DNA of 64,000 nucleotides. Origin: Phallusia mammillata. Taxonomy: Eukaryota. Made by a program: the position numbers and the translations under genes. Shown piece by piece: positions 44,801 through 47,800 of this stretch. Under the pieces are notes generated by a model. That model was given only the letters and a program-made list of their open reading frames with translations. It did not search any database and was not told the DNA's origin. Numbering within the stretch: the first letter of the stretch is position 1; every line of letters begins with the position of its first letter. The stretch spans positions 12,152,001 through 12,216,000 of the forward strand of contig OZ281494.1 in NCBI GenBank assembly GCA_965637545.1, written 5' to 3'.

Positions 44801-47800
44801 CCCGTTTAACTGCTTTGTATTGGTGATAATTCTGAAAAGAAAGAATGAAATTGTTATCCTGACAGCTCAGACGCTGGTGACAAAATAAAATTTTATAGTT
44901 TGTCAAAAAATAACTCTATCCCAAAAAATCATTATCACGATGCGAAAAACAAAGACTTGGTGATATGATACGTCGCTCATGATAAACCTGAATAGACACG
45001 CCATAATTTTACCGCTAAAACAAACTTATTATATCAACTAACTAAATTCCTTAGAGAACAAAATATGTAAATGTCAGTTTACGCAAAGCGAAAGTTCCCA
45101 AAAAACATCACAAAAAATCGTTTTGTTATCTCCCTGTGTTTTTTTATTGTGAAAAGATCGGAACGGTTTGTACAAATAGGCATGTACACAATCAATATTC
45201 TTATAAGTCTTCTGGGACTATGCACAGTGACTGTGTTGACTTTAGCCAATATTGACCGCTCAATTGCGCGCGTGCTCACTGTGTTAGAATTGTTGCATGT
45301 TCAAAACACAGTATTCATTTACCAGAATTCTGCAAAGTTGCAAACATGCTCCTGCTTTGTATTTTGTGCCATTAGAAATCCTAAATTATTTACCTTTAAT
45401 TCTGTCTATTTTTAACTGCATTAACATTAACTGAATCACGCTAATTGGCAAAAAAACGTATTGGACATTCGTGTATGTTCTAATACTTTCTGATAACGAC
45501 ATAATTTTAAACCAAGTGGTGTGGTATGTTAAAGAACATTTGACCCTCTTTTGATAGCAGTATTGCAAGAAAGTTAAATGAAAAGTATAAACAGTCATTT
45601 GAACAAAAACGTCTGTTGTTGGTTATTTATTACATCTCATTCCTCAATACAACTACTGGAATGTAAAATGGAACAGTATGCAGTTTCTACCAATAAAATG
45701 TTCTTTTCTTTAGCATCAAGATTCATAATTGTACCAATTTCGAACAAACACAACATCATGTTAAAAAGTGTTGGACATAAAACAGGGCATAAAATTTTAA
45801 TGCAAGTCCTTCTGATCTCAATTGTAGCCGGACGAGGTCCCAAACCCACCCTTTTTATCGCGCTCTTGTATGTCATAGTGCCATTTTCATTAGTGTCAAG
45901 CGAGGTGGGCAATTATGATTGATGCTTTCCCTTGGCCTCGTGGGTAATCATCAATGCAAGAAAATATGCCGCCACCAATCAGAAGGTCGTGTTGGAACTA
46001 TGTCCAAATATCAATAAGACTTATACTGAACGTGCGTCCTGAATTGCTACAATATCTTTAAAGATTTTACTTTTTGTGTCTAATTTAACTTTAATTAATT
46101 AGTTTTTTTTTTATTTGTGACTGGACCCAAAATTTTAAATTATTGTTTATTTTTTATTTGGTCACGTAATGCTTTATGAACCAATAACCAATGATGTTAC
46201 GGATATTTTGCATTCTTTTGTAAACGATGTAATTTTTTAAAAACTAACGTGATGGACAGGCAAATGCTTTTGGCATAAACAGACATGCTTCTAAATTGAA
46301 TTGACATTTTTAGTACTAATTCGTATGTCTTATGCAATAATGCACGCTTTTAAATTGTGCGTGGCATTTCAACTTAGGTTTTTGTAAGATCATTTTTAAT
46401 GCCATAGTTTGTGTTGTTTCGTTCAACGAGTAGTTTGACAGTGAACTTCTAAGTTTGAGTAGGCGTGTTGGAAAAAACAACGAGTTTCAATGTCTTCGCA
46501 AAAAAACAAACAATGCTTGGGCAAATCCTATATGATTATTATGGTTTCTAGCGTTTGCAATTCTTATAGATAAAATACTTTGACAAGAGTATCCTGTTTA
46601 TCAACGATATGCGCCCAGAACAGATTAATATGGACCCTATGTAGTTTACGAGTTACATATGAATGTGTTCATGCATTTGCCAGTGTTACTGACCTTACGA
46701 ATTTCAGAAGTGTTGATTTAGTACCACTGCTAACACTTACTGTTGTCCTATGTGCAGTTTTGTTAAATTCTTGCAGTTAGTTAAAATTAACTGATAACAA
46801 AGATATGAATTGAGTAAAACAAGAATTTGATTTCTTATGAGAAAAATGATTGCAAACGTTCATGGGATGAGTGCAATACTCACATCATTATTGCTTTGCG
46901 TCACTGCGGGTAAGTAAAAACGATATACAGGCGGAACTTTAATGTACTGTTTTACACTAAATTGAAACATTACTGTTGTTTATTGCTACAAATAGCGTGA
47001 AATCACGGAAAAATGTATCGAAGTTTTTGTTATTTTTGTTTAAAAGGGATTTTGCAAGAATTTTTATCATCTTGTTTTAAGGCGGTTAAATTTACTATTT
47101 TGAAAAGCGAAGCTAAGTAAAAAAACGTTTTTAAGTGTTTTTAGCCCCTGTCCTCGGTTACATTTTTTATCACAAACTTTGACCCTAAAACAACCGAACG
47201 GCGACAATATATATTTATTCCACGAAATTGAACTGTTTTTATTTTATTCCTATCAATTATTCATCACAAAAAAAACCTCATTCACAATGATCCGATTACA
47301 CTCGGCACAACAGAATTACAAATTGTTTATGCCAGGATGCATGACGTCAGAGTGACGTCACAAGTCACGTGGGCTGCCTCGGAACAAACGACTTTCACTT
47401 TCCGTGAAGTTGTCGACATTAATTATTGAAGGCATCTTATGTCACTGTGCAATATTAATGAGCTCGTTATATTTCGGCATTACTTTAGTACTTTGTTTGA
47501 GCGATGCTTGCCTGTCTGTAGAACTGATTTAAATGTGCGTAAATGACAGTTTAAAAACGTTTTTTCTGCATACATAAAAGATACTCTGCTAACCCAATGG
47601 TGTATTTTAAAAACATTAAAATTGAACTGCGTAATAGTCTATTATTCCATCATTTCAAAACCATTTAATACTGTCTTTATATATATTTATGAGGCGTATT
47701 TTACATTGTGTTACAGAATAACATTAAACGAGCATTTTACGATGTGTTCGATGCCTTTAAAGTGATTGAAGGGTGATATTATTACGTGCCAAAATTTGTC

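Follow-up and report, generated by a model that had tools for sequence, protein, structure and literature searches.

Two tandem receptor genes at the locus

The window, by which we mean the whole stretch of 64,000 nucleotides that was analysed, carries two tandem genes, A and B, both on the + strand and identical in exon order, as seen from Pfam searches with exon translations, from a tblastx comparison of the two halves and from lists of open reading frames (ORFs; Table 1). In each gene a V-set domain (Ig1) is followed by four I-set Ig domains, two FN3 domains, a transmembrane (TM) segment and a long tail. The exon translations matched V-set for Ig1, I-set or Ig_3 for Ig2 to Ig5, and fn3 or an FN3-like profile for two further exons, and the exon maps of A and B are collinear. 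In gene B a hydrophobic TM run lies in the ORF 55432-55656 and is followed by a tail exon of about 400 amino acids. The domain order of A and B, in which a TM segment and then a long cytoplasmic tail come after five Ig and two FN3 domains, is that of the Tutl/Dasm1/IgSF9 receptors, a family in which five Ig domains are the norm, and the Ig1 motifs of the window genes are ones that we take to be of the Tutl/Dasm1/IgSF9 type. By architecture and by these motifs, A and B are designated here as IgSF9/Turtle-like, a putative family assignment. Searches of the PDB returned generic Ig-CAM and V-domain matches only (VNAR, DCC, Robo, contactin, titin) and no family-specific relative. When the 48-amino-acid Ig2a exon was compared with protein representatives, the best 150 matches were giant multi-Ig proteins resembling titin or hemicentin, of which not one was more than 49% identical to the window or collinear with it, and a search for homologues of the Ig2a open frame in the length band of 37-117 amino acids gave no candidates.

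At the C-terminal end, the last conserved exon of gene B, which is putatively its last exon, ends with ...NVTSDTENL-stop at about 63565. IgSF9b is reported to bind S-SCAM through a C-terminal PDZ-binding motif (PMC3678166); the predicted E-N-L terminus of gene B differs from the class I motif S/T-X-V. The small final exon, (R)CAALKEEYMEYQRRRNVTSDTENL-stop, is conserved (window, about 63491-63565; L001:15925-15978; L004:16142-16192) and, given its conservation, the exon that ends at 62186 (SQV, CAG/GTT) seems not to be the C-terminus of gene B.

The exons of gene B that would encode the N-terminus of the long form lie far upstream. The first coding exon, with the signal peptide, is probably the ORF 29769-29820, which matches in phase the Ig1a acceptor at 37776 and is located 8 kb upstream of Ig1a. 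The V-set domain is split between Ig1a and Ig1b, and the Ig1b donor would join 48020, the first base of Ig2a, as G/AA, which would give a Glu codon identical to that of the alternative-exon junction described below. The intron between Ig1b and Ig2a is 8.3 kb long in gene B and contains the alternative exon. Since Ig1 exons are present upstream in the window, and Ig1b also upstream in one orthologue, this exon is internal and alternative.

Two side observations concern the putative first intron of gene B. The stretch 33000-37100 is GC-richer (0.41-0.42), holds long open frames in several frames and may be a transposon remnant. An open frame at 36088-36171, WLRAWARSWLRIFLFLPKSKTASAVLGV, weakly resembles the signal exon of gene A, WQRSWKRRWPAAGLLLLFMLATRQALGV; it was rejected as a homologue of that exon because it has neither an ATG nor a donor and because the match is driven by tryptophans, and the resemblance is either a chance match of this origin or a decayed relic.

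Table 1. Features of the two receptor genes and of the orthologous loci. Coordinates without a prefix are positions in the window; a slash marks an exon boundary.
Feature	Position	Strand	Description and basis
Gene A	~1.4 to 25 kb	+	Pfam, tblastx exon by exon, ORF lists
Gene A second signal-peptide exon	7774-7948	+	Acceptor ends 7773, ATG 7836 (62 nt), donor GTAAGT 7949, phase 1
Gene B	~29.8 to 63.6 kb	+	Second of the tandem pair
Putative first coding exon, long form	29769-29820	+	MYSCPRFLLIGFGLANF + one base, GTAAGT donor, phase 1
Ig1a exon	37776-37955	+	V-set first half, phase 1 in and out; acceptor tttttag/TT, donor AAAG/GTACGT; Pfam V-set
Ig1b exon	39551-39694	+	V-set second half, phase-1 donor G/GTGAGT; Pfam; orthologue exon
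3' splice acceptor	46760-46776	+	ttgttaaattcttgcag; read from sequence; probable SL trans-splice site
Leader of alternative exon	46777-46836	+	60 nt; read from sequence
Coding part of alternative first exon	46837-46909	+	Signal peptide MRKMIANVHGMSAILTSLLLCVTA + first base of Glu codon
Donor of alternative exon	46910-46915	+	GTAAGT, phase 1; read from sequence
Intron, alternative exon to Ig2a	46910-48019	+	1,110 nt; read from sequence
Ig2a exon	48020-48162	+	Acceptor shared by the donors of Ig1b and of the alternative exon
Orthologue alternative exon	L005:4245-4302	+	ATG-MVILVAFLISLQFLRPTFS + G, CAG/GTAAGA, phase 1; contig ERZ21736675:ctg14333l
Orthologue Ig1b exon	L007:1180-1296		56% identical; contig ERZ21736675:ctg14333l
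Orthologue alternative exon	L011:1080-1140	+	ATG-MLFIAIACFISGIVVTPAKT + G, CAG/GTACGT, phase 1; contig ERZ25067590:ctg27810

A probable alternative signal-peptide exon between Ig1 and Ig2

The alternative exon begins at 46777, immediately after an acceptor, aaattcttgcag, that ends at 46776. The main ATG (46837-46839) lies exactly 60 nt past the acceptor and opens a frame of 24 codons (46837-46908), after which a single base, G at 46909, precedes the donor. On the other side of the intron, position 48019 is the last of the Ig2a acceptor, tgtttcag, and Ig2a itself (Pfam I-set/Ig_3) opens with AA at 48020. The predicted junction 46909>48020 reads G/AA, a Glu codon, and continues in frame as SPAFRSTSPPSLIGRENEPIRLHC. 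What is found here is an ATG-initiated signal-peptide ORF whose donor phase fits the next common exon, the signal-peptide call being one made by simple hydrophobicity and the -3/-1 rule and not by a trained predictor. All the elements claimed for this site in the first-pass annotation, namely the acceptor, the 60-nt spacing, the hydrophobic signal-peptide ORF and the phase-1 GTAAGT, are present in the sequence. The ATG at 46837 has a poor -3 context (C), that of the ATG at 46846 being better (A at -3). The exon occurs as a single copy in the 240-Mb genome G000, which means that it is not part of a repeat.

Gene A has a comparable exon: a signal-peptide exon lies within its Ig1-Ig2 intron, with a phase-1 GTAAGT and an acceptor about 60 nt before the ATG. 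The two signal peptides share no sequence similarity, however, and differ in length (37 residues in gene A versus 24 in gene B), and the alternative exon is 3.8 kb from Ig2a in gene A versus 1.1 kb in gene B. It had been proposed that position, phase and spacing of the gene B exon mirror those of gene A. Layout and phase do correspond, but we rejected the agreement between leaders of 60 and 62 nt as meaningful, since the leaders of the orthologues measure 41 nt in one case and 5 or 15 nt in the other; from the leader lengths, this match of spacing is probably a coincidence. Both alternative leaders also contain a two-codon uORF, at 7789-7797 in gene A (ATG GTA TAG) and at 46805-46813 in gene B (ATG AAT TGA), which may be due to chance in AT-rich leaders.

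A single-copy cluster of motifs, made of two TGACGTCA 11 nt apart, a CACGTG and an IRF-like TTTCACTTTC, occupies 47342-47402 in the intron that separates the alternative exon from Ig2a; no counterpart of this cluster was found in the two orthologue introns. The TGACGTCA motif is present 19 times in the window, always inside the two gene spans, versus 1.1 expected from shuffles. Genome-wide it is present 29,527 times versus 6,119 for the reversed control, an about 5-fold over-representation, so that part of the excess in the window is a property of the genome. Because of this genome-wide over-representation and of the missing counterpart in the orthologue introns, the CRE-like pair at 47342/47353 was set aside as a special promoter mark.

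Rarity of the feature

Random sequence from a Markov-2 model with the composition of the window gives 0.11 signal-peptide-like ATG ORFs with a phase-1 GTRAGT donor per 64-kb strand, which corresponds to about 0.014 for the 8.3-kb Ig1b-Ig2a intron. The real + strand holds two such ORFs, 46837-46909 and 29769-29820, and the - strand none. A uniform scan was also applied (donor G/GTRNG, phase 1, ATG ORF of 18-40 codons, hydrophobic core near the exon end, the core being an 8-residue uncharged window with a mean Kyte-Doolittle value of at least 2.5). It yielded exactly one + strand site in each of three loci, the window and two orthologue contigs, and these sites are the alternative exons; the controls, 191 kb made up of the minus strands and two unrelated loci, yielded none. 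Judged by these counts, the alternative exon is more than a product of chance. The acceptor contributes little to this argument: it passes the pyrimidine/YAG rule that the confirmed acceptors of gene B satisfy, but 28% of the window's ATGs are preceded, at 5-70 nt, by an acceptor-like site of equal quality, and taken alone the acceptor at 46776 is weak evidence and not statistically distinctive.

Conservation in other tunicates

The 503-amino-acid open frame of the tail exon matched ORFs on tunicate contigs within ENA metagenome assemblies. Throughout, the loci on these contigs resemble gene B more than gene A (for the Ig4b/5a exon, identity is 67% with B and 42% with A), which makes them gene-B orthologues and places the A/B duplication before the splits among these tunicate species. 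The first-pass annotation had suggested that the same exon be sought in other tunicate orthologues; it was found in two of these gene-B contigs, with position and phase conserved. In L005 the exon lies 0.86 kb upstream of Ig2a (L005:5165-5308), with a tgtacag acceptor 41 nt upstream of the ATG. In L011 it lies 0.89 kb upstream of Ig2a (L011:2029-2172), and the best upstream AGs, which have weak pyrimidine tracts, are 5 or 15 nt before the ATG. These distances of 0.86-0.89 kb compare with 1.1 kb in gene B. The orthologue of Ig1b was found in L007, where Ig2a extends from 14295 onward and the Ig1b-Ig2a intron is 13 kb long.

The DNA around the alternative exons could not be aligned in any pair of the three species, and only Ig2a aligns; the exon was thus kept while the intron around it was randomised. 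Because the two species that supplied the orthologues are themselves relatives, with about 68% DNA identity in Ig2a, they do not count as fully independent witnesses. A search with the Ig4b/5a exon gave one Logan match (P0156), whose contigs, L008 and L009, are genomic and end inside the Ig2a-Ig2b intron, which makes them uninformative on the start exon.

The assemblies themselves gave rise to two side observations. The contigs L001-L003 and L014 are tunicate genomic contigs inside ENA metagenome assemblies, and their gene calls hold stops in code 11. Transposase fragments are present in introns of the orthologous genes, at L005:869-1117 and L006:2590-4333 (hAT dimerisation domain; FAM200/ZBED5-like).

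Spliced leader genes and a proposed route to the short form

In G000 the sequence ATTCTATTTGAATAAG with GT directly after it has 3,179 exact matches, versus 0 for the reversed control, and the SL RNA genes are partly organized in tandem arrays with a period of 553 bp (G000:C3:11108338-11147465). As ATTCTATTTGAATAAG is the Ciona spliced leader (PMC1488885, Table 1), the presence of Ciona-type SL genes indicates that the source organism is an ascidian with SL trans-splicing. SL trans-splicing takes place only at acceptors that lack an upstream partner donor, paired acceptors being cis-spliced (PMC1488885). Although an acceptor is superfluous in a first exon, this exon has one, in a genome that has the spliced leader, and the acceptor at 46776 is therefore read most simply as a trans-splice site. 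With trans-splicing limited to unpaired acceptors, the short mRNA would be expected to arise from a promoter inside 39695-46776.

These considerations point to SL trans-splicing onto a transcript from an internal promoter as the likely mechanism by which the alternative exon would be used. A promoter within the 7-kb stretch 39695-46776 would start the transcript. The acceptor at 46776, having no upstream donor on this transcript, would receive the 16-nt spliced leader, joined to 46777. Translation would begin at the ATG at 46837, or possibly at 46846, and the 24-residue signal-peptide exon would be cis-spliced from 46909 to 48020, a frame-compatible junction predicted to create the Glu codon. 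Cleavage of the signal peptide around VTA/E would then leave a receptor in which Ig2 comes first and the V-set Ig1 is missing. For the long form, the upstream signal exon (probably 29769-29820), Ig1a and Ig1b would be used, and then the shared Ig2a acceptor. If other Ig-CAMs are a guide, a receptor without its distal Ig domain presumably has altered trans-binding or none, while it keeps the rest of the ectodomain and the tail.

This arrangement resembles that of Ciona SL genes, in which an unpaired acceptor shortly upstream of the ATG takes the 16-nt leader, and the SL family is identical here. It differs from them in that the gene B acceptor lies inside an intron of a longer unit, and would be unpaired only on the predicted transcripts from the internal promoter.

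Discussion

In this work we describe, between the Ig1 and Ig2 exons of an ascidian IgSF9/Turtle-like gene, an exon that is very probably real and old, judging from its structure and from its conservation in two other tunicates. That 46777-46909 is a true alternative first coding exon of gene B, used by way of the internal promoter and spliced leader proposed above, is in our opinion probable, and a good deal more so than any other reading. An Ig1-less receptor produced from gene B is a well-founded prediction on the same sequence evidence.

The main rival is a cassette or 'poison' exon, into which the Ig1b donor at 39694 would be cis-spliced at the 46776 acceptor, the ATG ORF being incidental or secondary. 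The 133-nt exon is indeed flanked by a real-looking acceptor and donor and its length is not a multiple of 3. The 39694 to 46777 junction would read Val-Ser-stop, so that the product would be a secreted Ig1-only fragment or a target of NMD. Paired acceptors prefer cis-splicing (PMC1488885), and soluble isoforms of Drosophila Turtle exist (PMC3141077). Nevertheless, a cassette exon leaves unexplained why a phase-1 hydrophobic ATG ORF has been kept in three species whose introns cannot be aligned, and the acceptor is the least distinctive part of the feature. We consider it improbable that the exon serves in this way instead of as a first exon, although the two uses could coexist.

It is improbable to the same degree that gene B starts mainly or exclusively at the alternative exon, the V-set exons at 37776-39694 being part of another transcript or rarely joined to Ig2. 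The length of the Ig1b-Ig2a intron, 8.3 kb in the window and 13 kb in L007, would fit such a situation. However, the phase-1 donor of Ig1b is in frame with 48020 and gives the same Glu codon, Ig1b left unspliced runs into a stop after two codons, an exon 56% identical to Ig1b is found at the same relative place in the orthologue, and the family norm is five Ig domains. Were this reading true, four Ig domains would be the normal state of the receptor, with no regulated switch. A chance ORF with a fortuitous likeness to a signal peptide, and no exon at all, could be imagined from the shortness of the feature (73 coding bases) and from the hydrophobic ORFs that AT-rich DNA often holds, but it is already disfavoured to the point of being very improbable, with about 0.014 such sites expected in the intron and none in the 191 kb of controls, against one per orthologous locus (3/3), 0.86-1.1 kb upstream of Ig2a.

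Starting again from the alternative first exon with its proposed internal promoter, one may ask whether the acceptor at 46776 could have three alternative fates, being skipped, cis-spliced or SL trans-spliced, and whether IgSF9-like genes of tunicates have conserved such a three-way switch. On transcripts from the upstream promoter, skipping would give the five-Ig receptor, and cis-splicing would give Ig1-Val-Ser-stop, which would be secreted as a fragment of Ig1 or would be a target of NMD; transcripts of the internal promoter would undergo SL trans-splicing and encode the Ig1-less receptor. We regard this extended model as unlikely. If both paralogues were so arranged, and if the arrangement were older than the duplication that produced them, the range of N-termini in a synaptic adhesion family would be determined by how cis- and trans-splicing compete.

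Isoforms that differ by an N-terminal Ig domain and alternative signal-peptide exons are both well known, basigin and FGFR1 alpha/beta being cases with or without Ig1, and no new principle is involved. Neuroplastin is a further case, as a neural Ig-CAM made with (Np65) or without (Np55) the N-terminal Ig1, and the Ig1 of Np65 was proposed to mediate trans-homophilic dimerisation (PMC8830789). In Np55 the Ig1 exon is skipped behind one shared signal peptide (PMC8830789), whereas the short form of gene B would need its own start exon, signal peptide and internal promoter, and probably SL trans-splicing. Drosophila Turtle and mammalian Dasm1 (IgSF9) and IgSF9b, the receptor type to which gene B is related by architecture, have several isoforms with differing activities (PMC3141077). 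The Turtle isoforms described there are membrane-bound or soluble, a difference on the C-terminal side, while the gene B variant is N-terminal, and that paper makes no mention of an Ig1-less Turtle form (PMC3141077). Gene B is a case of an isoform with an alternative promoter and an alternative signal exon, as predicted from its exon structure, with SL trans-splicing as a local twist, that is, an ordinary type of isoform switch.

If the short form is made, each of the two tandem ascidian IgSF9/Turtle-like receptors would occur in a version that has the distal V-set domain and in one that lacks it. It is the distal domain that confers trans-binding specificity in most Ig-CAMs. Possible roles of the Ig1-less form are those of a cis regulator, a dominant negative or a receptor for another ligand. 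Whether the long/short switch is older than the A/B duplication is a matter of speculation, and so is a combinatorial adhesion code built from the N-termini of the two genes, both of which ideas go back to the first-pass annotation. If true, the proposal would provide a clear case in which an internal promoter and SL trans-splicing make a new protein N-terminus, and a testable tuning of neuronal adhesion in a simple chordate whose larval nervous system is fully mapped.
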